Origin: Malacoraja senta
Lineage: Eukaryota
Length of the DNA stretch: 64,000 bases
Assembly (NCBI GenBank): GCA_038087875.1
Contig: JAXLNO010003457.1
Location: 1-64,000, forward strand
Direction: 5' to 3'
A program made the translations under genes and the position numbers. Numbering within the stretch: the first letter of the stretch is position 1; every line of letters starts with the position of its first letter. This document shows, piece after piece, positions 1 to 54,176 of this stretch. The notes below the pieces were generated by a model. It did no database searches, was not told the DNA's origin, and was given only the letters and a program-made list of their open reading frames with translations.

Positions 1-330
1 GCGAGAATAACTCACTGTGTCACGGGTAGCAAGTAGGTCTTTCTTAACACTTTCTGTCTGACAACAAACTCTGCGCATAAATGTACCGAATGAACGGTGA
101 GAATGCACGCGATACGCTTGGGCTGTTTGTTCACAGAGTCGCTCTACAACCGTTGTCCCGTCATTTTGGGCTCATTCTATTTCAATATTCCAGATGACAT
201 CAGGTGTAATACCACGGGCGAGTTTGGTGACAATATCAGCTATATATGCGTTATGTGTAAACATTTGGAAGTGTAAGGCGGTGAATAAATAAGCTGATTT
301 AACGCGCTGTGACAACACTTGCTTTGACAG

Positions 331-552
331 GATCCTGCACATTTAGCGGGTGAACAGTCCCTGGGGACAACCCTCTCAGAAGGATGGGATGACATGACGA
401 ATGTGAGGGGCAAAGTGCGGCTTATCCGCAACGCCGTTCACCAGGGCCGGTCCCCGCGGCAGAATAACAAGCCCCGCAAAAAGTCGAAGAAAAAGGGTTG
501 TTTCCGATTGCGGATGGACAAGATAGGCGCAATGAGCAAGTTGGGCTGTTAG
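331..552 (+). CDS. nppc: CNP-like prepropeptide, copy 1, exon 2 coding part (exon 1 expected ~75-160 bp left of the window): DPAHLAGEQSLGTTLSEGWDDMTNVRGKVRLIRNAVHQGRSPRQNNKPRKKSKKKGCFRLRMDKIGAMSKLGC*
   Basis: Acceptor ttgacag|GAT at 330/331. Open frame to TAG 550-552. The 17-residue Cys ring (499-549) matches the natriuretic motif CFxxxxDxIGxxSxLGC, with a stop directly after the second Cys (CNP hallmark). Donor CG|GTAAGT at 572/573. Confidence 0.93.
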   Translation, partial: DPAHLAGEQSLGTTLSEGWDDMTNVRGKVRLIRNAVHQGRSPRQNNKPRKKSKKKGCFRLRMDKIGAMSKLGC

Positions 553-8500: not shown

Positions 8501-9093
8501 ATTGGGCGCTGCAGAAACTTACCGTGGATGGGAGTGTGGTGTCTAACAGCCCAACTTGCTCATTGCGCCTATCTTGTCCATCCGCAATCGGAAACAACCC
8601 TTTTTCTTCGACCTTTTGCGGGGCTTGTTATTCTCCCGCCGGGGCCGGCGTTCGGGAACCGCGTTGCGGATAAGCCGCACTTTGCCCCTCACATTCGTCA
8701 TGTCATCCCATCCTTCTGAGAGGGTTGTCCCCAGGGACTGTTCACCCGCTACATGTGCAGGATCCTGTCAAAGCAAGTGTTGTCACAGCGCGTTAAATCA
8801 GCTTATTTATTCACCGCCTTACACTTCCAAATGTTTACACATAACGCATATATAGCTGAAATTGTCACCAAACTCGCCCGTGGTATTACACCTGATGTCA
8901 TCTGGAATATTGAAATAGAATGAGCGCAAAATGACGGGACAACGGTTGTAGAGCGACTCTGTGAACAAACAGCCCAAGCGTATCGCGTGCATTCTCACCG
9001 TTCATTCGGTACATTTATGCGCAGAGTTTGTGTCAGACAGAAAGTGTTAAGAAAGACCTACTTGCTACCCGTGACACAGTGAGTTATTCTCGC
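5546..9093 (-). repeat. Right arm of the inverted segmental duplication
   Basis: Reverse complement of 1-3541 with few substitutions or indels. Confidence 0.95.
7865..8244 (-). other. nppc: 3'UTR exon 3 of CNP-like copy 2
   Basis: Exon 2 donor at 8523/8522, acceptor at 8245-8247, ATTTA-rich, AATAAA at 7888-7883. Confidence 0.72.
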
Positions 9094-9251
9094 CGCTGTG
9101 GTAGTTAGTGCACACGGTGAAACGCGGGGCGCGGGGATGTGCAGATGAACACATTTCATCCGGTTACCTGGATCGACGGAGTCAAAGGTTTGGCCTCCGC
9201 GGAGAGTAGAAGCAGTAAGAGTCCGGACAGCACCAGCGAGCAGAGGAACAT
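8543..9251 (-). CDS. nppc: CNP-like prepropeptide, copy 2, join(9251..9168, 8764..8543), 101 aa: MFLCSLVLSGLLLLLLSAEAKPLTPSIQ|DPAHVAGEQSLGTTLSEGWDDMTNVRGKVRLIRNAVPERRPRRENNKPRKRSKKKGCFRLRMDKIGAMSKLGC*
   Basis: Exon 1 has 28 codons with a hydrophobic signal peptide and EAKP, as in vertebrate CNP precursors. Phase-0 GT-AG intron of 403 bp (CAG|GTAACC ... ttgacag|GAT). Ring then stop. No frameshift. Confidence 0.95.
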
Positions 9252-18500: not shown

Positions 18501-19203
18501 CAACGCTCTTACCCCTTATACAATTATGTTGAAAAGTGGCTCTTTTTGATTTTTGCCCTGGATTTGTCTGCCTGCCACTTTTACCTTTCACCTTGCTACC
18601 TATTGCTTCCGCCCGCATTTTACACCCCTCTGTTTCTCTGCTCACCCATTTAAGAACCCCACCACCTCTTATTCTCTGTTTATTATTGTTTTCTTCTTTC
18701 CCCCCTACATGTTGGGTCTGAGTGCTTTCCTTCTCTGCCTCCTGCCTCACACACTGTCTAATAGCATTCTCTATTTGAGTCCCTCCCCCCAACCATTCTA
18801 GTTTAAAGTCTCCCCAGTAGCCTTTGCAGATCTCCCCGCCAGGATATCGGTCCCCCTCAGGTTCAAGTGCAACCCATCCTTTTTGTACAGGTCGAACCTT
18901 CCACAAAAGAAGTCCCAATGATCCAGAAATTTGAATCCCTGCCTTCTGCACCAGTCCTTCAGCCACGCATTTATCCTCCACCTCGCTCCATTCCTACTCT
19001 CACTGTCGCGTGGTACAGGCAGTAATCCCGAGATTGTTACCTTTGCTGTCCTTCTCTTTAACTCCCCTCCTAACTCCCTAAATTCTCCTTTCAGGACCTC
19101 TTCTCTTTTTTTACCTATGTCATTGGTACCTATATGTATCACGACCTCGGGTTCCTCTCCCTGCCCTTTCAGGATGTCTTGGACACGTTGGGACACATCA
19201 CAA
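15592..19203 (-). mobile_element. CR1 LINE, 5'-truncated in ORF1, with uninterrupted ORF2; private to unit 1
   Basis: Empty site aaatgctctc|cgatgatgc is present at ~39370-39389. The ORF1 tail has esterase motifs (HIGTND, DGLHLN). No TSD visible. Confidence 0.95.
15682..18981 (-). CDS. CR1 ORF2: apurinic endonuclease + reverse transcriptase (true start probably downstream of the annotated one); catalytic FADD mutated to FAND
   Basis: [61 protein letters not shown]. Confidence 0.92.
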   Translation of the reverse strand: MEDKCVAEGLVQKAGIQISGSLGLLLWKVRPVQKGWVALEPEGDRYPGGEICKGYWGDFKLEWLGGGTQIENAIRQCVRQEAEKESTQTQHVGGKEENNNKQRIRGGGVLKWVSRETEGCKMRAEAIGSKVKGKSGRQTNPGQKSKRATFQHNCIRGKSVVKTSLKALCLNARSIRNKVDELNVQIAINDYDIVGITETWLQGDQGWELNIQGYSIFRRDREKGKGGGVALLVREEINAVERKDISLEDVESVWVELRNTKGQKTLVGVVYRPPSSSSEVGDGIKQEIRNACNKGKTVIMGDFNLHIDWVNQIGRGAEEEDFLECMRDSYLNQHVEEPTREQAILDWVLSNEEGLVSRLVVRAPLGKSDHNMVEFFIRMESDIVNSETTVLNLKKGNFEGMRRELAKIDWQLVLKGLTVDMQWKAFKDCMDELQKLFIPVWQKNKSRKVVHPWITREIRDSIKAKDDAYKLARKSSIPEDWEKFRDQQRRTKGLIRKGKIDYERKLAGNIKTDCKSFYRYVKRKRLVKSNVGPLQSETGELIMGNKDMADQLNNYFGSVFTKEDINNLPEIAGGRGSKEMEELSEIQVSREVVLGKLNGLKADKSPGPDRLHPRVLKEVAPEIVDALVIIFQNSLDSGVVPEDWRVANVTPLFKKGGREKTGNYRPVSLTSVVGKLLESVIKDGIAAHLESGEIIGQSQHGFTKGKSCLTNLIEFFEDVTSRVDRGEPVDVLYLDFQKAFDKVPHKRLGYKLKSHGIGGSVLMWIENWLANRKQRVGVNGSFSQWQAVTSGVPQGSVLGPQLFTIYINDLDEGIESNISKFANDTKLGGSVSCEEDARRLQGDLDRLGEWANVWQMQYNVDKCEVIHFGSKNGKADYYLNGGRLGNGEMQRDLGVMVHQSLKVGMQVQQAVKKANGMLAFIARGFEYRSSEVLLQLYRVLVRPHLEYCVQFWSPNLRKDIIAIEGVQRRFTRLIPGMSGLSYEERLDRLGLYSLEFRRLRGDLIETYKILMGLDRLDAGRLFPMLGKSRTRGHSLRIRGKSFKTEMRKNFFTQRVVNLWNSLPQRVVEASSLAIFKRELDVALVAKGIRGYGEKAGTGY

Positions 19204-28100: not shown

Positions 28101-29500
28101 AATTATGTTGAAAAGTGGCCCTTTTTGATTTTTGCCCTGGAATTGCCTGCCTGCCACGTTTACTTTTCACCATGCTACCTATTGCTTCTACCCTCATTTT
28201 ACACCCCTCTGTCTCTCTGCTCACACATTTAAGAAACCCACCACCTCTTATTCTCTGTTTATTATTTTTTTCTTCTTCCCCCCTACCTGTTGCATCTGAG
28301 TGCTTCCCTTCTCTGCCTCCTGCCTCACACACTGTCTACAAGCTTTCTCTATTTGAGTCCCTCCCCCCAACCGTTCTAGTTTAAAGTCTCCACCGTAGCC
28401 TTTGCAAATATCCCCGCCAGGATATTGATCCCCCTCGGGTTCAAGTGCAACCCGTCCTTTTTGTACAGGTCACACCTTCCCCAAAAGAGGTCCCAATGAT
28501 CCAGAAACTTGAATCCCTGCCCACTGCACCAGTCCTTCAGCCACGAATTTATCCTCCACCTCGCTCCATTCCTACTCTCACTGTCGCGTGGCACAGGCAG
28601 TAATCCTGAGATTGTTACCTTTGCGGTCCTTCTCCTTAACTCTCCTCCTAACTCCCTAAATTCTCCTTTCAGGACCTCTTCCCTTTTTCTACCTATGTCA
28701 TTGGTACCTATTTGTACCACGACCTCAGTCTCCTCTCCCTCCCATTTCAGGATATCTTGGACACGTTCAGACACATCCCGGACCCTGGCATCAGGGAGGC
28801 AAATTACCATCCGGGTCTCCTGACTGCGTCCACAGAATCGCCTATCTGACCCCCTAACTATAGAGTCCCCTATTACTACTGCCCTCCTCTTCTTTTCCTT
28901 ACCCTTCTGAGCAACAGGACCGGTCTCTGTACCGGAGGCCTGGCCGCTGTCGCTACCCCCAGATAGGCTGTCCCCCCCAACAGTACTCAAACAGGAGTAC
29001 TTATTGTCAAGGTGTACAGCCACTGGGGTACTCTCTAGTCCCTGCCTGTGCCCCTTGCCCCTCCTAACCGTGACCCACTTGCCTGCCTCCTGTGGTCTTG
29101 GAGTCACCACCTCTCTATAACTCCTCTCTATGACTTCCTAACTCTCCCTGACCAGACGGAGGTCATCGAGCTGCTGCACCAGGTTCCTAATACGGTCCCT
29201 CAGGAGCCCCATCTCGACACGCCTGCCGCAGATGTGGACGTCTGGATGGCTATCAGACTCCTTGACCTCCCACATCTGACATCCAGAACAGTAAACTGCC
29301 CTGGCCCTCATACTCCTCCTGTACCTAGGATACAATACAATACAATACAAGTACAATACAAAGTACAATCTGCTGGAAGAAATCTGCAGGGATCTGACTC
29401 CCAATCAACTGCTTCCTCTAGTCCGCTTCCACCAATCAGCGGCTTCCTCAAGCCCACTTGTTTTGGATTGTAAACTGCGAATGGAACGTTACCGATTTGG
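25196..29500 (-). mobile_element. Near full-length CR1 LINE (ORF1 zinc-finger/esterase, ORF2 broken by frameshifts and stops); 5' end approximate
   Basis: ORF1 MRARAVYCSGCQMW (ATG 29311) ... IGDSIVRG ... IGTND ... DGLHLN. ORF2 pieces at 27787-28332, 26978-27637 and 25286-26599. Confidence 0.93.
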
Positions 29501-34136: not shown

Positions 34137-34845
34137 CTAACAGCCCAACTTGCTCATTGCGCCTATCTTGTCCATCCGCAATCGGAAACAACCCCTTTTC
34201 TTCGACCTGTTGCGGGGCTTGTTATTCTCCCGCCGGGGCCGGCGCTCGGGAACGGCGTTGCGGATAAGCCGCACTTTGCCCCACACATTCGTCATGTCAT
34301 CCCATCCTTCTGAGAGGGTTGTCCCCAGGGACTGTTCACCCGCTACATGTGCAGGATCCTGTCAAAGCAAGTGTTGTCACAGCGCGTTAAATCAGCTTAT
34401 TTATTCACCGCCTTACACTTCCAAATGTTTACACATAACGCATATATAGCTGAAATTGTCACCAAACTCGCCCGTGGTATTACACCTGATGTCATCTGGA
34501 ATATTGAAATAGAATGAGCGCAAAATGACGGGACAACGGTTGTAGAGCGACTCTGTGAACAAACAGCCCAAGCGTATCGCGTGCATTCTCACCGTTCATT
34601 CGGTACATTTATGCGCAGAGTTTGTGTCAGACAGAAAGTGTTAAGAAAGACCTACTTGCTACCCGTGACACAGTGAGTTATTCTCGCCGCTGTGGTAGTT
34701 AGTGCACACGGTGAAACGCGGGGCGCGGGGATGTGCAGATGAACACATTTCATCCGGTTACCTGGATCGACAGAGTCAAAGGTTTGGCCTCCGCGGAGAG
34801 TAGAAGCAGTAAGAGTCCGGACAGCACCAGCGAGCAGAGGAACAT
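34137..34845 (-). CDS. nppc: CNP-like prepropeptide, copy 3, join(34845..34762, 34358..34137), 101 aa: ...AEAKPLTLSIQ|DPAHVAGEQSLGTTLSEGWDDMTNVWGKVRLIRNAVPERRPRRENNKPRNRSKKRGCFRLRMDKIGAMSKLGC*
   Basis: Same exon lengths (84 + 222 nt), intact splice sites, 403-bp intron, intact ring. Confidence 0.95.
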
Positions 34846-34956
34846 CCCTTCTTCAAACGTCGGCGTGTCCCCGCCTCGACCCCTGTAATGAGTTTGTCGG
34901 AGCCGCGTCTGTCCGCGGTTCTAGAGGCGAATGGTGTTTCTCGCCGCTTCCCATCA

Positions 34957-35145
34957 TTTTATAACATGCAGTGACGTCAGCCAACGCCCCTTTTTCCAAC
35001 TTGTTGGGACAGAGGAAGAAAAGCCGGATCCCCCTCCCTTCCCTCCCCCTCCCACCTCTCCCTCCCCTCCCCCTCCCTCCCCCATCCCCCAACCACATGG
35101 TCTCCAATACTGAGTCCATGTGATGGAATTGGTGCGTTCGCCAAT
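34957..35145 (-). promoter_or_regulatory. Promoter of CNP-like copy 3 (TATA + CRE)
   Basis: TATAAAA 34963-34957; TGACGTCA 34972-34979; polypurine tract and CCAAT as in copy 2. Confidence 0.8.
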
Positions 35146-38100
35146 GCGGGAAGGCGGCGGCTTCACAGTCGGAGCGGGCGATGGGTGGTTGGACCATTTG
35201 ATAATCAATTGACACATAAACCGATCCGGTGCGGATGCAGATCAAATTTTGATCGATTAAGAAACCACACGGATCACCCGTTGGTATCGCCCCTTACATA
35301 TCCACAAACATGCTCGTGAAAAACTAGTAAATATTCTGTGAAGACGGGGGAATCTGACGAGCAGCGAATGTTATTTTAACGATATCTAGCTGAGGTTTAT
35401 CGAGATGCGAACACATCTTTGCGAAAGAATTGCAGAGAAACGCGAGCCAAATCTTTGTTAATACTAAAACAGCATTAAAATATTGGCGTTATTTTAAAAT
35501 GACTAATATTGTAAAGATATTTTATATTTAATTAACTGTGAATCCGGGATTGGACTTTAAACGATGGAACGGTACCAAATAATTCGTTCATATTTCCACT
35601 CCTTTGTTTTTAAATTGGGCGTCGGTAATAATCAGGCACAAGGAACCGCAACGTATTTTCAGCAAAACACAAAATACTGGAGTAACTGAGCCGGTCAGGC
35701 AACATCTGTGGAGGGAATGGACAGATGACGTTTAGAGTCGGGACCCTTCTTCAGACTGAAGGATCGCAGTCAGTCCATCCTGAGGATGCTATGAGAATGC
35801 AAGGTGACTTGGACAGGTTGTCTATTGTCTATTGTCCATCCCCTCCAGAGATGCTGCCTGACCCGCTGAGTTACTCCAGCACTCTGTGAAACGTCACCTA
35901 TCCATGTTCTCCACAGATGCTGCCTGACCCGATGAGTTACTCCAGCACTCTGTGAAACGTCACCTATCCATGTTCTCCACAGATGCTGCCTGACCCGCTG
36001 AGTTACTCCAGCATTTTGTGTTTGACGACTTAGGCAACCGGCGAAAAATTATTCTTGGAAAAAGTGCAAATCTATGAGTGAAGTTGGAAGGAACTCTCAA
36101 TGCTTCAGAAACGGTAAAAACAAAACCTTCACAAGACATAATGTTTTGGTGTAAATCTGCAATTACCGCTTCGCCCCTCGGTTGGTCCGCGAAAGCTGCA
36201 CTGCCCGAATTTTTAGAAGGATTAGTTTCTAATTTTCCTTCACACACCAATGGAACTCTGCCACTTTGTGCAACGGTCGCGTTTAATGTGTGACGCCAGA
36301 TATAGGTTGGTATGATTAGCAATGGGATCCGCGCGATGCTGAAGAATGTGAATTAATGGTACGGTTTGGTCAATTCTCAGCTTGGTTCTGTCTGCCAACG
36401 AGGACACCGCGAAACAGCATTAATTAAACACACCGGAGATTCTCATTAAAATGCACGCTTTGTATATAAACACGAACAACTGTATTTGATGGTTAGTAGG
36501 CGCTTCCCTGTCTAAATCACAGCAAAGACTCGGTGATCACTGACGGGCCTGAAATGCGAGGTGTGCTTTTCTGATCTTGATCCCGCACCTGCACTGGTAG
36601 AGCTGGAAGCCTCGTTTAGTGAAAGGCGGCGTGTCAGACCGACCAGTATTCGTTCATAATAAAACAATATGCCATAGATTTCAAACAATGACTTAAACGG
36701 TTTGTTTTTAAGAAGGTAAACGCACATATTCCCCGCGCATCTGTGTGAACTGGGACACTGTACAAACACAGAACTTGGCCACGCTCACCGCAGAGTTTTC
36801 CTCTTGAAATTGCAATGATGACATTGTCCAAGAAATGTACGCGGGGATTCCTCGTTAACGGGTCGGACACACATTCCTCGCTAACGAGTCTCAACCCGAA
36901 TCGTCACCTATTCCTTCTCTCCAGAGATGCTGCCTGTCCCGCTGAGTTACTCCAGCATTGTGTGTGTATTTTAGGAACAATGTCTGCCTTACGTCTGACT
37001 GAAGCGGCACATTAGCGGTTCTGAGATTCCCGGCAAGATGAGCGATGCCCGCACGTGTCTCTGGTGTTGTTGCAGCTTCTGTACTTCCCGCTTGCCCGGC
37101 GACAATCTCAATACCTCTCCGGACATTTTATGAGCAGGGTCCTGGTTCCTTGTAGATTGTTAGCGGAGGCGCGATCCAGCCTCGCCGATTTAATTTGTGT
37201 TCAGGTTGTGTGTGTCTGCGGGGGGAATTATCTTCGTGGTGTCCCAACTGCATGGACGGGCTGCGACCACCCGACCTCGCCACCCCACCCGGACAACTCC
37301 AGTGCGGGCCAGACTACGGCGGTCCGGCACGATCCTTAACACAAACCCTAACCCCGTTCATGGGCCTAGAAAGAAACATAAATTGGTCAACCGGGCGTAG
37401 GAAGAGGGCAGAGAGGAAATGGATGGAAGCGTTAAAGGCGCGAGAGCACAACGGCCTTAATCTAGCAACAACTCAAACCTCGGGTGGACCCTGACTGACT
37501 CCTACAAATCTACAGAAGGGCAAGTGTAAAGGGGAGTAGATTTGGACGAGGGTGATGAGACCGTGGGTCAGACCAAAGTGGCAGGACACGGTGAAAAGGA
37601 ATCTCCAGGGGGAGATCAGTGAGCACGAGGCATTTTGTCCCACTGCCCAATAAATGATAACCTAACCCCGTTTCATGTTTAGGATCAAAGCCCGACAAAG
37701 CCACCGAACGCAGCTCAACCGACAGCGAGGAAAACAACCAAAGCAACATAAAGCGAATACATTTGGTACCAAGGTCTGTTTTTACGGTGACATTCAGTCA
37801 TTTTCAGTGTGGCGCTCTCAAAATGTGAAACATCGTTTAGCAAGTAGTAAATAATGGAGTAGCAAGATGGATTCAAAAGTGGCTGAATGGGAGATACCAG
37901 AGAGTAATGGTGGATGGCTGTTTGTCAGGTTGGAGGCCGGTGACTAGTGGGGTGCCTCAGGGATCTGTGTTGGGTCCACTGTTGTTTGTCATATACATCA
38001 ATGATCTGGATGATGGTGTGGAAAATTGGATTAGTAAGTATGCAGATGATACTAAAATAGGTGGTGTTGTGGATAATGAAGTAGATTTTCAAAGTCTACA

Positions 38101-41100
38101 GAGAGATTTAGGCCATTTGGAAGATTGGGCTGAAAGATGGCAGATGGAGTTTAATGCTGATAAGTGTGAGGTGCTACATCTTGGCAGGACAAATCAAAAT
38201 AGGACGTACATAGTAAATGGTAGCGAATTGAGGAATGCAGTTGAACAGAGGGATCTAGGAATAACTGTGCATAGTTCCCTGAAGGTGGAATCTCATGTAG
38301 ATAGGGTGGTAAAGAAAGCTTTTGGTGTGCTGGCCTTTATAAATCAGAGCATTGAGTATAGAAGTTGGGATATAATGTTAAAATTGTACAAGGCAATGGT
38401 GAGGCCATTTCTGGAATATGGTGTGCAATTCTGGTCGTCAAATTATAGGAAAGATGTCAATAAAACAGAGAGAGTACAGAGGAGATTTACTAGAATGTTG
38501 CCTGGGTTTCAGCACCTAAGTTACAGAGAAAGGTTGAACAAGATAGGTCTTTATTGTTTGGATAGAGATCTTTAAAATTATGAGAGGGATAGACAGAGTT
38601 GACGTGGATAAGCGTTTTCCATTGAGAGCAGAGAAGTTTCAAACAAGAGGACATGATTTGAGAATTAAGGGACACAAGATTAGGGGCAACATGAGGGGAA
38701 ACTTCTTTACTCAGAGGGTGGTAGCTGTGTGGAATGAGCTTCCAGTGGAAGTGGTGAAGGCAGGTTCGATTTTATCATTTAAAAATAAATTGGATAGGTA
38801 TATGGACGGGAAAGGAATGGAGGTAGATGGGACTAGGTGGGAGTAAGTGTTCCGCACGGACTAGAAGGGCCGAGATGGCCTGTTTAGGTGCTGTAATTGT
38901 TATATGGTTATAAGAGTCAGGCGCGATCAGTCGGGGCTCAAACTCGTCGCGATTATCGGTAACGTCGGTGAGAATTTCCAATCCTTATAGAATCCCACTG
39001 GTTTGCAGCTTTGTTTAATTCCCCTGGTGTTGATTTCTCTCTCCCCCCCCCAACCACATTTTGGCCGTTGGTTTTCAGTGCCGACCACCCCCCCCCCCCC
39101 CCCGCCCGACCCTCACCCTCCACCCTGATCTCAGGTTACATCCGACATCCACTTTCCGCCGCTCCCTCGTCCGTTCTGCGCCAGTTCTGCTCTGCTCTGG
39201 CCCGGGTGTAACGCTGGGCCCACTTTGAGGATGTTGTACAACTTTCCGGAGCGGGGCCGCCATGGAATCGGCCAATGATTACAATCGGCCAAGTGCAGCA
39301 GTTGCGCCACTTTCACCTCGTTTACAAATCACTGCGTTTATTGCCGCGAACGGCGATGAAGTCGATAGTAAATGCTCTCCGATGATGCAAGTCCGAGTTT
39401 GGTGTTTGGGTCTCGGTTTCACGTAGAGTTTAGATCCCGGCCCGTCAATGTAATTGTGTTAATATTAATGTGAACTCTGGTGAGGTACTTTACAGAACAT
39501 GTACATACTAACACGGTTGTGTTGAGCCAGCACCGCCATTCAATATGATTATGGCTGATCATCTAAAATCAGTACTCCGTTCCTGCTTTTTCCCCATATC
39601 CCTTGATTCCTTTAAGAACTAAATGTAACTCTCTCTTGAAAGTGACCCACCTGGTTCGTCCTATTGCTTACCATCTCCCGCCACCCCCCCCCCTCACCTC
39701 TTTAAACGAGCTCTCTCCCATTAACACTGTCATGTTCCTGCATAATCTCCACAGGAAACAATCTACCCCTTTGCTTCCACAGATGCTGCCTGACCCACCG
39801 AATTTCTCTAGAAAATCGTTTATTGCATTCATGTTTTGTGATGTACTTACTACACTTTAATGTTCCTAGCTTTTAACATGGTACAGTACTTTCGTAATGC
39901 AAAAACAATTATGCTTGAGATTGTTATTTTAACATTCCTTGATTCGCCATAATATTTTCCAATACCCTGGAATTGGACCCTGTGACAGTTTGCTTGCAGG
40001 AAAGACCAGTAATAGAGAATCATTGCTAGATATTAAAATGTTTAACGACACAGAAATAAAATAATCTTTTCAGAAAATGACCTGTCACCCCACCCAAAAT
40101 ACAATGCCCAGCACTTCACACACCTCCGCATTTGGCACATAGCCTCAGCAACCCTAGTTTGTACAAGGTGAGGCAGAGGTTCACGCACCTCCTCCAACCT
40201 CATCTACTGTATCCACTGTTCCAGCTGTCAACTCCTGTACATCGACGAGACCAAGCGCAGGCTCGGCGATCGTTTCAGTGAACACCTCCGCTCAGTCCGT
40301 CTTATCCTACCTGATCTCCCGGTTGCTCAGCACTTTAACACCCCCTCACATTCCCAATCTGACCTTTCTGTCCTGGGCCTCCTCCATTGTCAGAGTGAGG
40401 CCCAGCGCAAATTGGAGGAACAGCACCTCATATTTCGCTTGGGCAGCTTACACCTCAGCGGTATGAACATTGACTTATCTAAATTCAAGTAACCCTTGCT
40501 TTCCCTCTCCCTCCATCCCCTCCACCTTTCCAGTTTTCCCACCAGTCTTAATGTCTGTGACTATATTCTATCTCTGTCCTGCCCACTCCCCTGAAATCAG
40601 TCTGAAGAAGGGTCTCGACCCAAAACGTCACCCATTCCTTCTCTCCAGACATGCTGCCTGTCTCGCTGAGTTACTCCAGCTTTTTGTGTCTATCTTTGTA
40701 CAAGTATCTAACAAGCTTGCAGCCATTGTACACTGTCCAAATATTCACCATCCAAATAAAGCTTAAATCTTATAACTCCCTCTAACAGTGGAGTTATTCA
40801 CAATTTGTTGGGCAAATTATTCAATAACGCCAAAGAAATCAAAAGCAACATTATCACCCAATTATCTGACGTCTTTTAAAATTATATACCAGATATTTTA
40901 AAGAATTACCTACAAAGAACTAAATATGTACAATTGGAAACAACCCGTCCTATTATTTTAATGCAATTGATCGTCAATCTCTTGATCAATATACAGTGTT
41001 TTAATTATTCTTTAAAATCAATTCAGTAAAATAATTCATGTATCTTTACATATATCCGGGCAGTACTTCAATAACAGTGATGGGCCAAAGGATTGTGTCC

Positions 41101-43381
41101 CCATCCCCCATGAATGATGTAAAAATGTATGGACAATACATAAACACACATTGTAATTATCATACAAGACAAGCTTAGTCAGCATTCATATTCAAAGTAT
41201 GCTTCAGTACTCAACAGAGGAGGATTAACGGAAAAGTGTTCCGCCCGCTACCTAAGCGCTATAAGCAAATAATAATTATATTATATACTAATTATATACA
41301 CTGCAAATACCGACAGCTAAAAAAATACACAGCAACAATTTTTAAACTATTCCGCATTTTCACCTATTTGTTTCCCCCTAAATATTGCAAAAAATGTTTG
41401 TGGGAACAATGAAGGATGAGCTCAAGGTGCTTCATCTAACTCAAGATTTTCAATGTATCAAACATATTCAGAGCTCTATTACGTATCAATCCCATCGCTG
41501 ATCCCAATTGCACATCCATAATCCACCAAACCCGCATCACTGTATTCATTTACCGAAAATCTTTTGCACAAAAATAACTACATGACTATTTTAAGGGACC
41601 ATTAATACTCCCACACTACTTCATTTTACTGCACACCAAATGCCAAACAACAACCGTGTTTAGTAATACCGAAGTCGCTTACAGTAAATTATACCTTTAA
41701 TGCAAACAACCCTTTTTCTGCACTTCATGACTATGCAACAGTTCATTACATGATTCGCTTTACTGTAATACATTACCTGATCCCTAATGTTGTACCCAAC
41801 TTCATTCCAAATCTCCTTTGCCTCAATCCTTTACAACAGATGGGCATTACCGCAAGCAATTGCCATTTCGTGCCCTCCTTACTATTCACCATTACCTCGC
41901 CAAATCCTGCTTATTGTCCCCGGTGCGTCAGATCACTTTCACTGCATTAGACTCTCATTATTGTGCCAGATACCTATTATCTGTGAGTGCGTTTATTTTT
42001 GAGTTATTTTTCACTCTTATCCCGTTTCAATTCCCAGCAGAAGTTGCGGATCACCCAGTGTCAAATGACCAGGTCATACTCACGAACATGGTACAACAGT
42101 ATTTATTGAAAGGCACTCATAACATGCTGCAGCATGTTGCTTCAGCTGTGTTGCCGTGTAGATTAAATGCGATAATATGAACAGTGTAGTAGGCGGAGCT
42201 TCTAGTAATAAAGCACTACATTGGTTAGTAAGTGAAGTAACCAATCTACATCTTTCCTTGCAGAAATAAAAGTGGTGCACATCTAAATCTAGGTGACCTA
42301 TAAGAATAAACACACCACTACGTGATGACTGAATAATATAGATCCTCGTCTGCTCCCTTCTCCGGTTAAATAACCGGGGACCCATGCGGCGAGAGCACTG
42401 GAGACCTGGGGGGTGAACACGGCGAAGCTGGCGAGTGCGGCACCGAACGTTGTGGTGAGGGCATAGCTGGTCTGCAGCAGCAGAGCATGAGGGAAGAGAC
42501 AGTCCGACAGTAGAAGGGTAGATCGGACGCGTGGCCTCTGGATACGAGACCACAGGACGTGGTTCCTACACAGGAAGGAGATGTTGACGGTTGCTTGTGG
42601 TATTCTTGAACAAACTAGCGTATTCCGGCCAATCTATACCCAGTTTATCCAAGCTCAGTATCTTCTCGTAGCTCCTCATCGAAAACTTCAGGGAGGGACT
42701 CAGATACTTACACGCAGACACACCTGCTGATTGATTGCGCCACGAGGAGGATTTCTTAGAGTTCGTGATTTGAATTGTAATAAGTGGATGTTTTTGTAGG
42801 TTAGAGTTCATTCCTTCTCCAACAAAATGGGAAACCACGCCAATGAAGACATGACCGCTGACTCCGTCGGTCCTCTGCAATAATATGGAGTGAATTTCCA
42901 AAGGGAAATTGCTTTTTTATTTTTTTAATTTCATTTTTATTTATTAGAAGCAGTGTACAAAAATATAACCAGCGGCATATGACATAATACATTTATTGTA
43001 CAGCTTCAATTTCAATTTTTAGCTATAGCTAAGAGAACAGAAGAGAGAAAAAGCAAGAGAGAGAAAAAGTGGATGTGCAAGGATAGAACCCCTAGACTAC
43101 CAAATTGGTGTAGCCAAAGAGTGAGTAAGTAAAATAAATAAGGAAGACATAGAGAGTGGTGAATCTGTGGAATTCTCTGCCACAGAAAGTAGTTGAGGCC
43201 AGTTCATTGGCTATGTTTAAGAGGAAGTTAGATGTGGCCCTTGTGTCTAAAGGGATCTGGAGGTATGGAGAGAAGGCAGGTACAGGATACTGAGTTGGAT
43301 GATCAGCCATGATTATATTGAATGGCGGTGCAGGCTCGAAGGGCCGAATGGCCTACTCCTGCACCTATTGTCTATGTTTCT

Positions 43382-44750
43382 ATACCTAGACCAGGTTGCC
43401 TCAAGGATTTGTCAACTCGCCTACATTGTTTTCCAGGTGTCTGCAGGATCAGCTAAGTACATTAAAGTTTAAAATGAATTCCACATTGGTGCAGTATGTT
43501 GATGACCTATTGGTAGCAAGTAAGGATGAATCCAGTAATCGGGAAGACTCTGCACAATTACTGAATCATCTAGCCGATCTAGGATATGTGGTTTCCCCAT
43601 CTAAAGTATTAGTAGCTCAGGAGAAAGTAACATTTCTAGGGATTATAATTTCGGCCACCGAAAGAAGTCTTGAGAAGAGCAGACTCTAACCTATTTGTCA
43701 ATTTCCAGTTCCAAAAGAAGCCAAACAAGTGAGGCAATGGCTTGGCATGGTCAATTATTGCAGACCCTGGATTCCAAATATAGCTCTAGAGACCAAGGAG
43801 CTAACACCCTATACCAGCAAGGAGGGTGAATTTAAAGTGACATGAGAGGCACAGGAAGGATTTGATGACTTGAAAATATCATTGATGCGAGCCCCGCCAT
43901 TGGGAAGGCCATTATACGATCGTCCCTTCCAGCTGCATTGTACAATTCTATCTGATTGTGCAACTTCAGTATTAATGCAAAAGCATGGGGATAGACATAG
44001 GCCAGTTGCATACTACTCCTCTAAATTAGACCAAGTACTCAAATCTCAGTACTCAGTAGATTTGCACTCAAATCTTAACTGCAATCTACAATAGTTTACA
44101 ATCGGCTGCTAATTTGACACTCCAGCAGCAAATTGTAGTGTACAGTTCACATTCGGTATCGGCATTGTTGGGGCAGCTTCAAACCCAGCATTTGACAATG
44201 GCCCGCCGAAATAAGTATGAGATCTACCTGCTAAACAATCTGAAATTACAGTTCAAGCACTGTACATTAATTAACCCAGCCTCTTTTCTTATTTCACCCC
44301 CAGAAGAGCGAGCAGAAGCAGGACACGACTGTCTATTTGTTACAGAGGAGGAAAAATCAGTGAGAGAGGACTTGAGGGATGTACCCAGGGAAAACCCTGA
44401 CATCACATTATATGTGGACGGTAGTGCATTCATTGGACCGCGAGGTGAGAGGTTGTCTGGGTATGCAATTATTAATCAAGGAATGGAAATTGTAGAAGCA
44501 GCTGCTTTTGAATGACCATATTCAGCACTACAATCTGAATTATTCACTTTAATTAGGGCGTATTATTGGGGAAGATCTGAAAGTAAACATTTACACTGAT
44601 TCTCGATATGCATTTGGAGTGGTGCATGATTTCGGACAATTATGGAAAAATAGAGGATTTCTAACTTCTGCCGGAACCCAAATATCACACGAATAATTGG
44701 TGATAAATTTATTGAAGGCCTTAATGCTACCCAGACAAATCTCCGTAATA
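43382..44750 (+). mobile_element. ERV pol fragment, unit 2 copy
   Basis: Near-identical to 23355-24722. Confidence 0.9.
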
Positions 44751-45222
44751 AAATAATAATAATAATAATAATAAATTTTATTTATGGGCGCCTTTCAAGA
44801 GTCTCAAGGACACCTTACAAAATTTAACATATAGTGTAAAAACATGTAAGCGGAATGAAATAAATAGTAAAGACATCACCAGTACACAAATTAAAGACAG
44901 AATTCAATCCGAAAACAAAAATCAAAAACACAATATGAAAGAGAGAGCAGCGGCTGCTAAAACTAGCCAGCGTCCACCCCCCCCCCCTTCCGGCAGCCAT
45001 CTTGGACACAGAATAAAATAATCATTTACACACAAAAATCATCCCCCCACAATGATTACCACTGTGGGGGTAGGCACAATGTCCAGTCCCCAACCCCAGT
45101 TCTCCGAAAGTCTGCACCAATGTGGAATTCATTTTAAACTTTAATGTACTTAGCTGATCCTGCAGACACCTGGAAAACAATGTAGGCGAGTTGACAAATC
45201 CTTGAGGCAACCTGGTCCAGGT

Positions 45223-48200
45223 ATAGAAACATAGAAAATAGGTGCAGGAGTAGGCCATTCGGCCTTTCGAGCCTGCACCGCCATTCAATATGATCATGGC
45301 TGATCATCCAACTCAGTACGCTGTACCCGCCTTCTCTCCATACCCCCTGATCCCATTAGCCACAAGGGCCACATCTAACTCCCTCTGAAATATAGCCAAT
45401 GAACTGGCCTCAACTACCTTCTGTGGCAGAGAGTTCCAGAGATTCACCTGTGTGAAAAATGTTTTTCTCATCTCGGTCCTAAAGGATTTCCCCTTAATCT
45501 TTAAACTGTGACCCCTTGCCCTAGACTTCCCCAACATTGGGAACAATCTTCCTGCATCTAGCCTGTCCAACCCCTTAAGAATTTTGTAAGTTTCTATAAG
45601 ATCCCCCCTCAATCTTCTAAATTCTAGCGAGTACAAGCCGAGTCTATCCAGTCTTTCTTCATATGAAAGTCCTGACATCCCAGGAATCAATCTGGTGAAC
45701 CTTGTCTGTACTCCCTCTATGGCAAGAATGTCTTTCCTCAGATTTGGAGACCAAAACTGTACGCAATACTCCAGGTGTGGTCTCACCAAGACCCTGTACA
45801 ACTGCAGTAGAACCTCCCTGCTCCTATACTCAAATCCTTTTGCTATTAATGCTAACAAACCATTCGCCTTCTTCACTGCCTGCTGCACCTGCATGCCTAC
45901 TTTCAATGACTGGTGCACCATGACACCCAGGTCTCGTTGCATCTCCCCTTTTCCTAATCGGCCACCATTTAGATAATAGTCTACTTTCCTGTTTTTGCCA
46001 CCAAAGTGGATAACCTCACATTTATCCACATTATACTGCATCTGCCATGCATTTGCCCACTCACCCAGCCTATCCAAGTCACCTTGCAGCCTCCTAGCAT
46101 CCTCCTCACAGCTAACACTGCCCCCCAGCTTCCTGTCATCCGCAAACTTGGAGATGTTGCATTCAATTCCCTCGTCCAAATCATTAATATATATTGTAAA
46201 TAGCTGGGGTCCCAGCACTGAGCCTTGCGGTACCCCACTAGTCACTGCCTGCGATTCTGAAAAGGACCCGTTTACTCCTACTCTTTGCTTCCTGTTTGCC
46301 AGCGAGTTCTCTATCCACATCAATACTGAACCCCCAATACCGTGTGCTTTAAGTTTGTATACTAATCTCTTATGTGGGACCTTGTCGAAAGCCTTCTGAA
46401 AGTCCAGATATAACACATCCACTGGTTCTCCCTTATCCACTCTACTAGTTACATCCTCGAAAAATTCTATAAGATTCGTCAGACATGATTTATCTTTCAT
46501 AAATCCATGCTGACTTTGTCCAATGATTTCACCACTTTCCAAATGTGCTGCTATTCCATCTTTAATAACTGACTCTAGCAGTTTTCCCACTACCGATGTT
46601 AGACTAACTGGTCTGTAATTCCCCATTTTCTCTCTCCCTCACCTTTTAAAAAGGGGGGTTACATTAGCTACCCTCCAATCCTCAGGAACTACTCCAGAAT
46701 CTAAGGAGTTTTGAAAAATTATCATTAATGCATCCACTATTTCTGGGGCCACTTCCTTAATACTCTGGGATGCAGCCTATCTGGCCCTGGGGATTTATCG
46801 GCCTTTAATCCATTCAATTTACCTAACACCACTTCCCGGCTAACCTGGATTTCACTCAGTTCCTCTATCTCATTTGACCGGCGGTCCCCTGCTATTTCTG
46901 GCAGATTATTTATGTCTTCCTAAGTGGTTATTCAATTGGTCTGACATATCCTTGTTCCCCATGATCAATTCACCGGTTTCTGACTGCAAGGGACCTACAT
47001 TTGTTTAAACTAATCTCTTTCTCTTCACATATCTATAAAAACTTTTGCAGTCAGTTTTTATGTTCCCTGCCAGTTTTCTTTCATAATCTATTTTCCCTTT
47101 CCTAATTAATCCCTTTGTCCTCCTCTGCTGGACTCTGAATTTCTCCCAGTCCTCTAGTAGGCTGCTTTTTCTGGCTAATTTGTACGCTTCATCTTTTGTT
47201 TTGATACTATCCCTGATTTCCCTTGTTATCCACGGATGCACTACCTTCCCTGATTTATTCTTTTGCCAAACTGGGATGAACAATTTTTGTAGTTCGCCAA
47301 TGCAGTCTTTAAATGCCTTCCATTGCATATCCACCGTCAACCCTTTAAGAATCAATTGCCAGTCAATCTTGGCCAATTCACGTTTCATACCCTCAAAGTT
47401 ACCTTTCTTTAAGTTCAGAACCATTGTTTCTGAATTAACAATGTCACTCTCCATCCTAATGAAGAACTCAACCATATTATGGTCACTCTTGCTCAAGGGG
47501 CCACGCACAACAAGACTGCTAACTAACCCTTCCTCATTACTCAATACCCTGTCTAGAATAGCCTGCTCTCTCGTTGGTTCCTCTACATGTTGGTTTAGAA
47601 AACTATCCCGCATACATTCCAAGAAATCCTCTTCCTCAGCACCCTGCCAATTTGATTCACCCAATCTATATGTAGATTGAAGTCACCCATTATAACTGTT
47701 TTACCTTTGTTGCATGCATTTCTAATTTCCTGTTTGATGCCATCCCCAACTCCACTACTACTGTTAGGTGGCCTGTACACAACACCAACTAGCGTTTTCT
47801 GCCCCTTAGTGTTTCAGAGCTCTACCCATATCGATTCCACATCCTCCAAGCTAATATCCTTCCTTTCCATTGCGTTAATCTCCTCTCTAACCAGCAACGC
47901 TACCCCACCTCCTTTTCCTTTCTGTCTATCCCTCCTGAATATTGAATATCCCTGGATGTTCAGCTCCCAGCCTTGGTCTCCCTGGAGCCATGTCTCCGTG
48001 ATCCCAACTATATCATAATCATTAATAGCTATCTGCACATTCAACTCATCCACCTTATTACGAATGCTCCTTGCATTGAGACACAAAGCCTTCAGGCTTG
48101 TTTTTACAACGCTCTTACCCCTTATACAATTATGTTGAAAAGTGGCCCTTTTTGATTTTTGCCCTGGAATTGCCTGCCTGCCACGTTTACTTTTCACCTT

Positions 48201-49530
48201 GCTACCTATTGCTTCTACCCTCATTTTACACCCCTCTGTCTCTCTGCTCACACATTTAAGAAACCCACCACCTCTTATTCTCTGTTGATTATTTTTTTCT
48301 TCTTCCCCCCTACCTGTTGCATCTGAGTGCTTCCCTTCTCTGCCTCCTGCCTCACACACTGTCTACAAGCTTTCTCTATTTGAGTCCCTCCCCCCAACCG
48401 TTCTAGTTTAAAGTCTCCACCGTAGCCTTTGCAAATATCCCCGCCAGGATATTGATCCCCCTCGGGTTCAAGTGCAACCCGTCCTTTTTGTACAGGTCAC
48501 ACCTTCCCCAAAAGAGGTCCCAATGATCCAGAAACTTGAATCCCTGCCCACTGCACCAGTCCTTCAACCACACATTTATCCTCCACCTCGCTCCATTCCT
48601 ACTCTCACTGTCGCGTGGCACAGGCAGTAATCCTGAGATTGTTACCTTTGCGGTCCTTCTCCTTAACTCTCCTCCTAACTCCCTAAATTCTCCTTTCAGG
48701 ACCTCTTCCCTTTTTCTACCTATGTCATTGGTACCTATTTGTACCACGACCTCAGGCTCCTCTCCCTCCCATTTCAGGATATCTTGGACACGTTCAGACA
48801 CATCCCGGACCCTGGCACCAGGGAGGCAAATTAACATCCGGGTCTCCTGACTGCGTCCACAGAATCGCCTATCTGACCCCCTAACTATAGAGTCCCCTAT
48901 TACTACTGCCCTCCTCTTCTTTTCCTTACCCTTCTGAGCAACAGGACCGGTCTCTGTACCGGAGGCCTGGCCGCTGTCGCTACCCCCAGATAGGCTGCCC
49001 CCCCCAACAGTACTCAAACAGGAGTACTTATTGTCAAGGTGTACAGCCACTGGGGTACTCTCTAGTCCCTGCCTGTGCCCCTTGCCCCTCCTAACCGTGA
49101 CCCACTTGCCTGCCTCCTGTGGTCTTGGAGTGACCACCTCTCTATAACTCCTCTCTATGACTTCCTAACTCTCCCTGACCAGACGGAGGTCATCGAGCTG
49201 CTGCTCCAGGTTCCTAATACGGTCCCTTAGGAGCCCCATCTCGACACGCCTGCCGCAGATGTGGACGTCTGGATGGCTATCAGACTCCTTGACTTCCCAC
49301 ATCTGACATCCAGAACAGTAAACTGCCCTGGCCTTCATACTCCTCCTGTACCTAGGATACAATACAATACAATACAAGTACAATACAAAGTACAATCTGC
49401 TGGAAGAAATCTGCAGGGATCTGACTCCCAATCAGCTGCTTCCTCTAGTCCGCTTCCACCAATCAGCGGCTTCCTCAAGCCCACTTGTTTTGGATTGTAA
49501 ACTGCGAATGGAACGTTACCGATTTGGGTT
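45223..49530 (-). mobile_element. Near full-length CR1, unit 2 copy, with the same disablements
   Basis: ORF coordinates are offset by exactly 20027 from unit 1. Confidence 0.93.
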
Positions 49531-52500
49531 CCTCCTCCCTCACCAACAGCTCCAACAGCTCCAACAGCTCCAACAGCTCCAACAGCTCCAACAGCTCCAA
49601 CAGCTCCAACAGCTCCAACAGCTCCAACAGCTCCAACAGCTCCAACAGCTCCCGGCCTCTGTGGAACAAAGCCCCGCGATGGGGTTTTGTACTCACCGCC
49701 CGGACTTTACTCCTCCCACACCAACAGCTCCAACGGCTCCCGGGTTTCTCTTCATGAGGCCATGTCTTCATTGACGTGGTTTCCCATTTTGTTGGAGAAG
49801 GAAGGAACTCTAACCTACTCGCACCTCTTAACAATTTCCCTTTTAATTTTGAAATTAACAAATTCGTTTTTGGACAAATTTCAAATCAAAATGTTCCAGG
49901 ACGCAGCCAATCACACTCACATGCGTTTCGAAGCCCATCTCCTATCCTCGATCTTAATCTGAATGCATGTAAATGAATTCTAGGCACATGAGCAAAATTG
50001 AACACAAAAAGGAAATTAGTCCACTTATCAGAAGTATACCTAACCACACTCCTGCATAAATCAAAAACATCCACTTATTACAATTCAAATCACGAACTCT
50101 AAGAAATCCTCCTCGTGGCGCAATCAATCAGCAGGTGTGTCTGCGTGTAAGTATCTGAGTCTCTCCCTGAAGTTTTGGATGAGGAGCTACGAGAAGATAC
50201 TGAGCTTGGATAAACTGGGTATAGATTGGCCGGAATACGCTAGTTTGTTCAAGAATACCACAAGCAACCGTCAACATCTCCTTCCTGTGTAGGAACCACG
50301 TCCCGTGCTCTCGTATCCAGAGGCCACGCGTCCGATCTACCCTTCTACTGTCGGACTGTCTCTTCCCTCATGCTCTGCTGCTGCAGACCAGCTATGCCCT
50401 CACCACAACGTTCGGTGCTTCGCCGTGTTCACCCCCCAGGTCTCCAGTGCTCTCGCCGCATGGGTCCCCGGTTATTTACCCGGAGAAGGGAGCAGACGCG
50501 GATCTATATTATTCAGTCATCACATAGTGGTGTGTTTATTCTTATAGGTCACCTACATTTAGATGTGCACCACTTTTATTTCTACAAGGAAAGATGTAGA
50601 TTGGTTACTTCACTTATTAACCAATGTAGTGCTTTATTACTAGAAGCTCCGCCTACTACCCCCAACCGTTCATATTATCGCATTTAATCTACACGGCAAC
50701 ACAGCTGAAGCAACATGCTGCAGCATGTTATGAGTGCCTTTCAATAAATACTGTTGTACCATGTTCGTGAGTATGACCTGGTCATTTGACACTGGGTGAT
50801 CCGCAACTTCTGCTGGGAATTGAAACCGGATAAGAGTGACAAATAACTAAAAAATAAACGCACTCACAGATAATAGGTATCTGGCACAATAATGAGAGTC
50901 TAATGCAGTGAAAGTGATCTGACGCACCGGGGACAATAAGCAGGATTTGGCGAGGTAATGGTGAATAGTAAGGAGGGCACGAAATGGCAATTGCTGTCGG
51001 TATTTGCAGTGTATATAATTAGTATATAATATAATTATTATTTGCTTATAACGCTTAGGTAGCGGGCGGAACACTTTTCCGTTAATCCTCCTCTGTTGAG
51101 TACTGAAGCATACTTTGAATATGAATTCTGACTAAGCTTGTCTTGTATGATAATTACAATGTGTGTTTATGTATTGTCCATACATTTTTACATCATTCAT
51201 GGGGGATGGGGACACAATCCTTTGGCCCATCACTGTTATTGAAGTACTGCCCGGATATATGTAAAGATACATGAATTATTTTACTGAATTGATTTTAAAG
51301 AATAATTAAAACACTGTATATTGATCAAGAGATTGACGATCAATTGCGTTAAAATAATAGGACTTGGGTTGTTTCCAATTGTACATATTTAGTTCTTTGT
51401 AGGTAATTCTTTAAAATATCTGGTATATACTTTTAAAAGACGTCAGATAATTGGGTGATAATGTTGCTTTTGTTTTCTTTGGCGTTATTAAATAATTTGC
51501 CCAACAAATTGTGAATAACTCCACTGTTAGAGGGAGTTATAAGATTTAAGCTTTATTTGGATGGTGAATATTTGGACAGTGTACAATTGCTGCAAGCTTG
51601 TTAGATACTTGTACAAAGCTAGACACAAAAAGCTGGAGTAACTCAGCGAGACAGGCAGCATCTCTGGAGAGAAGGTATGGGTGACGTTTTGGGTCGAGAC
51701 CCTTCTTCAGACTGATTTCAGGGGAGTGGGCAGGACAGAGATAGAATATAGTCACAGACATTAAGACTGGTGGGAAAAGTGCAAAGGTGGAGGGGATGGA
51801 GGGAGAGGGAAAGCAAGGGTTACTTGAATTTAGATAAGTCAATGTTCATACCGCTGAGGTGTAAGCTGCCCAAGCGAAATATGAGGTGCTGTTCCTCCAA
51901 TTTGCGCTGGGCCTCACTCTGACAATGGAGGAGGCCCAGGACAGAAAGGTCAGATTGGGAATGTGAGGGGGTGTTAAAGTGCTGAGCAACCGGGAGATCA
52001 GGTAGGATAAGACGGACTGAGCGGAGGTGTTCAGTGAAACGATCGCCTTTCTACTCAGCCTTTGAAATGACATCAGGACCGCACCTTTCTGTTCGCCCAT
52101 TGGTCTGGTCGAGTCAAATTACAGATCAATAGACCCCGGCGTTCTCCCATTGCACCGACGAGAATTTCTAGAAGTATATTTTCATCATTCTTTATTTTAT
52201 AAGTAATTATGTTTTCGATGCTAACAGATTACTTGTAAAGTAACGTCGCGTTGACTTCCGTTAAAATGAGGTCTGTCCCATAATGTGAAAGGGAAGAAGA
52301 TACAAAGTGCTGGAGGCTGAGATTATCCCATTGTTTATGAGACAGTTAGACAGGTACATGGATAGGACAGCTTTGGAGGGATATGGCCCAATCGCAGGCA
52401 GGTGGGACTAGTGTTGCTGGGACATGCTGGCCGGTGTGGGCAGGTTGGGCCGAGGGGCCTGTTTCCACACGGTCACACTGTATGACTCAATATAAAATAT

Positions 52501-52789
52501 TGTCGGATTTGTTCGGTTGGATCTTGGCCGCAATGATTGCCACGGACTCAGCTGGAGGGTGAAGAGTCCAGAGCGTGCACGGTCCACACCTCACCTCTTG
52601 GGTCAAGCCAATCCCCCCCCCCCCACAGTCCCCTCCCAACCCCGCCCCACAGTCGGAAGTGTAATCCCTCTATTTTTGGCAGGAACTGTGTCAGGAAAAA
52701 CGGGAATACGGGCGGAGCAGAGGCTGTGATCCCAGTGAAATCGCCAACAAACCGCGCTGAATTGAAACAAGCGCCTGCAAACCAAGCGG

Positions 52790-53169
52790 AGAGCTGGCAG
52801 GTCTGTGTTTATTTCGTATTTCACGGACTACAATAAATAAAGACTGTCGGACTGTCGTCAAATGCAATTTTACACGTAATCGCTATTAGGACAAATGTTA
52901 CCAATTCTACTTGTTAAAGTGTTACAAACCCTCTCTTCAGTTTGTTACATAAATAAACTTTCATAAATATCTTTCTTTTATAAAGATATAGTTTAAACAT
53001 AAATACATTTGTGCAGAAATTAAATAAACAGTCATGATCCGTTGCGGTTCTACATAAGAGTCGCTGGTAAATGTCATTCTTCGTACCGGGAGAAACGGCG
53101 TCGTTTTCGGAGGAAAAGCTACTTTCGCGAAACAAGAAGACGTCCAGAAAGTGTTCGGAGTCCGGTGTC
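52790..53169 (-). other. nppc: 3'UTR exon 3 of CNP-like copy 4
   Basis: Donor 53448/53447, acceptor 53170-53172, AATAAA 52813-52808. Confidence 0.72.
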
Positions 53170-53467
53170 CTATCAACACAAACAAGCGCCGGTTAGTGGG
53201 CCAGTAACAGGCAGAGTGGCCGAACGGCGGTGACACCCGGCAGTCGCTGGGACAACTCGCTTTCAGCACAAGCGGAGGATGAGAGGACATTAGCGGAACT
53301 TGTGTTGAATCAACTCGCTGCCTGAAACTCTCTTTGTTTCACGCACTCTCCTCTGAACAACCACAGGTTGCGGAGCGCCGCGTTTCTGGGTCCCAACAAA
53401 CATTCGCAGTGAAATAAATGCCGGCATTGGGCGCAGCAGAAACTTACCGTGGCTGGGAGTGTGGTGT

Positions 53468-54176
53468 CTAACAGCCCAACTTGCTCATTGCGCCTATCTT
53501 GTCCATCCGCAATCGGAAACAACCCTTTTTCTTCGACCTGTTGCGGGGCTTGTCATTCTCCCGCCGGGGCCGGCGCTCGGGAACGGCGTTGCGGATAAGC
53601 CGCACTTTGCCGCTCACATTCGTCATGACATCCCATCCTTCTGAGAGGGTTGTCCCCAGGGACTGTTCACCCGCTACATGTGCAGGATCCTGTCAAAGCA
53701 AGTGTTGTCACAGCGCGTTAAATCAGCTTATTTATTCACCGCCTTATACTTCCAAATGTTTACACATAACGCATATATAGCTGATATTGTCACCAAACTC
53801 GCCCGTGGTATTACACCTGATGTCATCTGGAATATTGAAATAGAATGAGCGCAAAATGACGGGACAACGGTTGTAGAGCGACTCTGTGAACAAACAGCCC
53901 AAGCGTATCGCGTGCATTCTCACCGTTCATTCGGTACATTTATGCGCAGAGTTTGTGTCAGACAGAAAGTGTTAAGAAAGACCTACTTGCTACCCGTGAC
54001 ACAGTGAGTTATTCTCGCTGCTGTGGTAGTTAGTGCACACGGTGAAACGCGGGGCGCGGGGATGTGCAGATGAACACATTTCATCCGGTTACCTGGTTCG
54101 ACGGAGTCAAAGGTTTGGCCTCCGCGGAGAGTAGAAGCAGTAAGAGTCCGGACAGCACCAGCGAGCAGAGGAACAT
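53468..54176 (-). CDS. nppc: CNP-like prepropeptide, copy 4, join(54176..54093, 53689..53468), 101 aa: ...AEAKPLTPSNQ|DPAHVAGEQSLGTTLSEGWDVMTNVSGKVRLIRNAVPERRPRRENDKPRNRSKKKGCFRLRMDKIGAMSKLGC*
   Basis: Same exon lengths, intact splice sites, 403-bp intron, intact ring. Confidence 0.95.

Follow-up and report, generated by a model that had tools for sequence, protein, structure and literature searches.

What force makes the tandem copies of a small secreted-peptide gene differ from one another mostly at amino-acid-changing positions, and mostly in the middle of the precursor? The question was raised by the first 64 kb (64,000 nucleotides, here called the window) of an unplaced 169,765-bp contig of Malacoraja senta (JAXLNO010003457.1) that consists of one array only. 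The array is tandem, rich in long interspersed nuclear elements (LINEs), and carries eight copies (c1 to c8, seven of them distinct, all with intact reading frames) of a gene whose predicted product resembles C-type natriuretic peptide (CNP). Diversifying selection had been put forward in the original prediction, made on the stretch bounded by the copy 3 stop codon and the copy 4 start codon. We favour, with about even confidence, a modular evolution of the precursor in which the excess of amino-acid changes would derive from relaxed constraint, a mutationally hot tract and clustered events, and not from sustained diversifying selection; the latter is plausible, not established.

The gene consists of an exon 1 of 84 nt, an intron of 403 nt (GT..AG) and an exon 2 of 222 nt including the stop codon, and its product is 101 amino acids long. 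The precursor begins with a signal peptide of 20 residues, continues with a prosegment and basic cleavage sites, and closes at the C-terminus with a disulfide ring of 17 residues, directly after which comes the stop. The stretch and the features of copy 3 are the following:

34137-54176, minus strand: stretch under study, from the copy 3 stop codon to the copy 4 start codon
34137-34845, minus strand: copy 3, whole gene
34137-34358, minus strand: exon 2 of copy 3, 73 codons and the stop, coding for the bulk of the prosegment, the basic cleavage sites and the ring of 17 residues
34359-34761, minus strand: intron 1 of copy 3, 403 nt, GT..AG
34762-34845, minus strand: exon 1 of copy 3, 28 codons, with the 20-residue signal peptide and the first eight residues of the prosegment
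34140-34190, minus strand: ring of copy 3, CFRLRMDKIGAMSKLGC, directly adjoined by the stop codon at 34137-34139
34195-34254, minus strand: hypervariable GC-rich tract of 60 nt in copy 3, gene columns 592-651, codons 63-83
34958-34979, minus strand: promoter of copy 3, with a perfect cyclic AMP response element (CRE), TGACGTCA, at 34972-34979 and TATAAA at 34958-34963

The CRE and the TATA box lie 133 and 117 nt upstream of the ATG, respectively, and both are kept in c2 to c7, among which the promoter and the splice sites are identical; the CRE of c8 is mutated.

Among the four window copies (c1 to c4), 15 of the 101 amino-acid sites vary (25, 27, 33, 49, 54, 65-67, 69, 70, 72, 74, 78, 79 and 83), exactly as had been counted by eye, and all of them lie between the signal peptide and the ring, with two silent differences only (gene columns 592 and 601, both in c2). 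The approximate pairwise counts of the original prediction were reproduced as well: c3 and c4 differ at seven coding positions, all amino-acid-changing, vs three in the intron, and c2 and c3 at six coding positions (four changing, two silent) vs none in the intron, while site 54 reads R/R/W/S. This site was considered as a special signal and dismissed, given that about two pairs of changes sharing a codon are expected by chance from 21 changes in 101 codons; the intron identity of c2 and c3 was likewise dismissed as a conversion tract, a difference-free run of 488 nt being unexceptional with 43 differences in about 3.9 kb (estimated P of about 0.2). The copies beyond the window added P22S in c5, F2Y in the signal peptide of c8, and K98N in the ring of c5 and c8. 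The description of signal peptide and ring as frozen is therefore too strong, since c5 and c8 carry changes there; what remains is a lower variability, with one change in the 20 codons of the signal peptide among all copies, and with ring and signal peptide together less variable than the rest (p = 0.010; p = 0.12 without the changes of c1).

Over all copies, 21 of the 306 coding columns are variable (19 amino-acid-changing and 2 silent), compared with 7 of the 403 intron columns (p = 0.0007), so that the coding sequence does diverge faster than the intron, as had been claimed. The contrast overstates the effect, because intron and remaining non-coding DNA show no significant difference in variability (6/403 vs 87/3403, p = 0.23), and the wider non-coding flank, with a variability of about 2.4-2.9%, is the proper yardstick in place of a single intron of 403 nt. 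In this flank c3 and c4 differ at 48 of 3251 positions (1.48%) and c2 and c3 at 37 of 3251 (1.14%); the corresponding exon divergences of 2.3% and 2.0% are about 1.5-1.7 times the flank rate, and the low value of the intron is within chance. Among c2 to c6 the exons vary at 13/306 columns (4.25%), the intron at 6/403 (1.5%) and 3.4 kb of flank at 2.6-2.9%, and exon 2 is surpassed in variability by some non-coding windows. Relative to non-coding DNA as a whole, the variability of the exons is higher by a factor of 1.5-2.7, and their GC content predicts 8.8 variable sites vs the 21 observed.

Selection was assessed with a Goldman-Yang-type codon model of our own and likelihood-ratio tests. With all copies, omega (the ratio of amino-acid-changing to silent rates, dN/dS) was 3.6-4.4 (p = 0.013-0.039); it was 2.5-3.1 without c1 (p = 0.08-0.18) and 2.5 for the four window copies alone (p = 0.16-0.19). 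The prosegment gave an omega of about 5, vs about 0.9-1.4 for the signal peptide and the mature peptide (heterogeneity p = 0.004-0.011), in a domain partition that, like the finding itself, was chosen after the data had been seen. In a count test, 2 of the 21 changes were silent, vs about 26% (5.7 changes) expected under the local spectrum (transitions to transversions, ts:tv, 0.70; P = 0.05); the 19:2 proportion corresponds to a dN/dS of about 3.3 with all copies, and p = 0.12 was obtained when clustered changes were collapsed to single events. An omega above 1 was thus recovered with all copies, and persisted when c5 to c8 were added, as the proposal of diversifying selection had implied, and its significance was lost without c1, with the window copies alone and with clusters collapsed. 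The silent rate equals that of non-coding DNA (2.5-3.7% vs 2.4-2.9%). The copy-specific changes of c2 to c8 (six changing, two silent) occur at non-coding density and look neutral.

Much of the excess is concentrated in one copy and one tract. Copy 1 carries seven copy-specific amino-acid changes, five of them within 21 nt, and its private changes number seven in the exon vs six over about 1500 non-coding nucleotides (p = 0.0005); no donor for the cluster was found elsewhere in the assembly, and the cluster looks like one or a few clustered events. The 60-nt tract, which codes for the furin-type RxxR site and for the tail predicted at the N-terminus of the mature peptide, holds 12 of the 21 variable coding columns, including both silent ones. 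Changes fall there on 10 of 44.4 amino-acid-changing sites and on 2 of 15.6 silent sites, the latter a silent variability of 12.8% vs a background of about 2.9%, and C<>G transversions make up 7 of the 21 exon changes vs 13 of 109 non-coding ones (p = 0.02). The raised silent rate and the enrichment of C<>G transversions together suggest a mutational hot spot. Within the tract lies a quasi-palindrome, CGCCGG-CC-CCGGCG (34231-34244 in copy 3), which is perfect in c2 to c4 and broken in c1 and c5 to c8; the C<>G transversions cluster around it.

The copies exchange sequence, and gene conversion is pervasive across the whole repeat unit: the four-gamete test fails for 183 of the 435 pairs of informative sites, and 12 of these failures lie within the gene. 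A star-like topology, with bootstraps of 25-60, was obtained for the non-coding tree, and tree-based selection tests are unreliable here because the array is a mosaic. Of the two processes to which the constancy of the ring had been attributed, purifying selection would fit the lower variability of ring and signal peptide, itself modestly supported, and gene conversion proved unit-wide, not specific to the ring or the intron. Hypermutability of CpG does not explain the pattern, since one of the 21 coding changes is a CpG transition and the observed/expected ratio of CpG is about 0.95, and GC-biased conversion was set aside as no weak-to-strong excess was seen among the variable columns by inspection. 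The non-coding differences between units are rich in transversions (ts:tv 45:64), a bias that recurs in read-derived contigs of this species and of two related species; such a spectrum is unusual for vertebrate germline DNA, and so is the absence of CpG depletion.

From the directly observed gene model, copy number, counts, mosaicism and marginal omega above 1, we infer the force behind the excess as follows. The array comprises at least eight young CNP-like paralogues in LINE-rich units that keep exchanging sequence. Purifying selection would hold two modules of the precursor, the signal peptide and the 17-residue ring, and the middle segment, from the prosegment through the furin-type site to the N-terminal tail of the mature peptide, would change at or above the neutral rate; the excess over neutral would most likely arise from relaxed constraint together with a putative hypermutable, GC-rich tract and a small number of multi-nucleotide or conversion events, chiefly in copy 1. 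Several results weigh against this reading. Relaxed constraint alone predicts a dN no higher than neutral, and the amino-acid-changing sites are 2-3.2 times as variable as non-coding DNA (p = 0.037 for c2 to c8; p = 0.0005 with c1). The test of omega = 1 in the prosegment gave p = 0.007 with all copies; the six exon variants that copies share are all amino-acid-changing, at three times the density of their non-coding counterparts (p = 0.025); and the changing sites beyond the tract remain at 1.7 times the background (p = 0.10), with no silent change in 63 sites. The main alternative is that diversifying (positive) selection has pushed the copies apart around the processing site and in the tail, which would tune receptor potency or processing, with ring and signal peptide conserved, a pattern known from peptide families of venom, defence and reproduction; we rate that explanation a serious possibility, somewhat short of an even one. 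It accounts for the 19:2 proportion, for the omega values over the whole gene and in the prosegment, and for a variability driven neither by CpG nor by weak-to-strong bias. The arginines at P1 and P4 of RxxR are kept in all copies while their neighbours vary, K78N creates an N-R-S sequon, and the predicted peptide of 30 residues has variable residues in its tail as well. The contigs of one related species span the intron and the flanks (about 95% identity), with intron and 3' flank contiguous, and stop on either side of exon 2, which would fit an exon 2 that varies most between copies in that species also. The case is tempered by the three loss-of-significance results given above, by a site partition picked after the data had been seen, by recombination and multi-nucleotide events, which inflate such tests, by the raised silent rate in the 60-nt tract, and by young private changes that look neutral. 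A hypermutable tract combined with relaxed constraint fits the data slightly better. Conotoxins, amphibian skin peptides and defensins are tandem families of secreted peptides in which the signal peptide is conserved and the mature region hypervariable. The array resembles them in tandem amplification, near-invariant signal peptide, amino-acid-changing excess and exchange between copies, and differs in that the mature core (the ring) is conserved, that the prosegment and tail vary, and that the omega above 1 is marginal.

Two further explanations were weighed. The copies may be redundant and drifting to pseudogenes, all their differences being neutral and the conservation of ring and signal peptide a matter of chance in a very young array. 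Intact frames are weakly informative on this point (probability of no stop about 0.48, of no indel about 0.25), the deficit of changes in ring and signal peptide reached p = 0.12 without c1, and c8 combines a mutated CRE with F2Y. Drift is nevertheless improbable, given eight of eight open frames, a promoter and splice sites identical in c2 to c7, and the heterogeneity among domains; moreover, no natriuretic-peptide gene outside the array was detected in the 1.94-Gb assembly, and therefore some copies probably supply the hormone. Still less credible, and in our view very unlikely, is that the differences are consensus errors or haplotypes wrongly placed in tandem. The contig is unplaced, contains the array only and starts inside a gene, and the identical c6 and c7 could be a false duplication. 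Support from reads, which had been proposed as a check, was partial: the majority letters at columns 563, 612, 623 and 651 are independently present in read-derived (Logan) contigs from two runs of the same organism, and the letters private to c3 were not seen in those contigs, which drop rare variants and can show majority letters, not rare copy-specific ones. Against an artefact, two units are perfectly identical over 11,308 bp, so consensus noise is very low and consensus error unlikely; the coding sequences have no indels in any copy, unit lengths vary between 19.3 and 25.9 kb, two copies are inverted, and related species carry the locus in several contigs too.

The membership of the gene in the natriuretic-peptide family was assessed from the precursor and the ring. 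The copy protein matches the Pfam profile PF00212 (ANP) at residues 77-101 with 32.1 bits, above the cut-off of 27, and all eight copies score 29.3-33.3 bits with this profile in a genome scan. The ring spans C85 to C101 in every copy and aligns without gaps to the rings of CNP, ANP and lebetin. The stop directly after C101 in all copies gives a CNP-type end with no C-terminal tail, and most of the prosegment and the peptide are encoded in the last coding exon, the layout of CNP-type precursors. Basic sites are kept in all copies (RxxR, with R68 and R71, and KK[K/R] before G84). The ring retains F, D, I, G, S, L and G, and not all invariant residues are conserved, since eight of eight copies carry the substitutions G3R, R8K and G14K, with position 14 changed from K to N in c5 and c8; the altered positions are constant in the four solved peptides for which alignments were shown. 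By its sequence, the array is one of CNP-like natriuretic-peptide paralogues with a non-canonical ring.

Among solved structures, human CNP-22 (PDB 1jdp chain H) was the best match (E = 1.6e-4), followed by the viper venom peptide lebetin 2 (PDB 1q01), whose alignment reaches into the N-terminal tail (xNKP...GCF), and then by ANP. The likeness to CNP and its gene NPPC lies in the 17-residue disulfide ring without a tail and in the same precursor layout; unlike CNP, the array copies have CFR for CFG, DKI for DRI, SKLGC for SGLGC and LRM for LKL, and unlike the single NPPC gene there are at least eight tandem copies. The natriuretic peptides of venoms, such as lebetin 2 and taipan TNP-c (PDB 8s9y), derive from recruited paralogues whose flanks evolve fast; those venom peptides with alignments shown keep the canonical G, DRI and SGLGC, which the array copies do not, and we know of no venom apparatus or expression site for the array gene.

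Other natriuretic rings were sought in the genome with the Pfam profile, two degenerate patterns and a protein query. Outside this contig, the 1.94-Gb assembly, which may be incomplete, yielded neither a canonical ring (CFGxKLDRIG or DRIGxxSGLGC) nor a further Pfam ANP match above the cut-off, and the other matches to the ring searches were chance matches, a retrotransposon and unrelated frames only. A word-based homologue search with the 101-aa protein returned no candidate, a full phmmer search of exon 2 against 1.8 billion representatives returned a spurious repeat protein only, and none of six copy proteins was present in the protein collection by exact look-up. A look for transcripts turned up no RNA run with the gene. 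In the literature, no paper was found with the ring sequence or with a description of such an array. The locus is present in related species at an identity of at least 90%, spread over several contigs.

CNP is central to salt and volume control in sharks and rays and, to our knowledge, is regarded as their only natriuretic hormone. An array of at least eight intact copies with a non-canonical ring, in an assembly where no canonical gene was found, would alter the way in which natriuretic signalling is studied in this lineage. The family as such, non-canonical, CNP-like and perhaps comprising all natriuretic-peptide genes of the animal, is a more interesting object than the selection signal. 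True diversifying selection on the tail and processing region would make it one of the rare core endocrine peptides to evolve in the manner of toxins or defence peptides. The fullest version, in which a CNP-derived array of at least eight copies, with a cationic ring that breaks three constant positions, provides the only natriuretic-peptide genes of the animal, and in which diversifying selection on tail and processing site has turned a core osmoregulatory hormone into a fast-evolving, multi-isoform family like the venom and host-defence peptides, is tentative and, taken as a whole, rather unlikely. The selection signal is marginal, and the practical value lies in copies and sites that are now defined, together with the tests to apply to them.

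The repeat units of the array are 19-26 kb long (19.3-25.9 kb) and 97.4-99.5% identical to one another. The remaining copies with located coordinates, and the spacer of the stretch under study, are:

1-552, plus strand: copy 1, part of the intron and exon 2 (331-552), cut by the start of the contig, exon 1 missing
8543-9251, minus strand: copy 2, whole gene
53468-54176, minus strand: copy 4, whole gene, with exon 2 at 53468-53689, the intron at 53690-54092 and exon 1 at 54093-54176
149693-150401 of the contig: copy 8, with the mutated CRE and F2Y in the signal peptide
34846-53467, no strand: spacer between c3 and c4, part of the 19-26 kb repeat unit, largely LINE fragments

The identical copies c6 and c7 lie in units that match perfectly over the 11,308 bp mentioned above (contig positions 91288-102595 and 117235-128542), and beyond this stretch there are single mismatches only, for kilobases; this identity would stem from a duplication that is either very recent or introduced in assembly. 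Apart from the gene, each unit consists of LINE debris, and open reading frames for a reverse transcriptase, an endonuclease and a GDSL esterase were identified in the unit equivalent to the spacer. One spacer frame (15682-18981, minus strand) is open over 1099 amino acids and corresponds to a LINE with endonuclease and reverse transcriptase domains, and a separate frame of the GDSL-esterase type is located at 28376-29110 on the minus strand.

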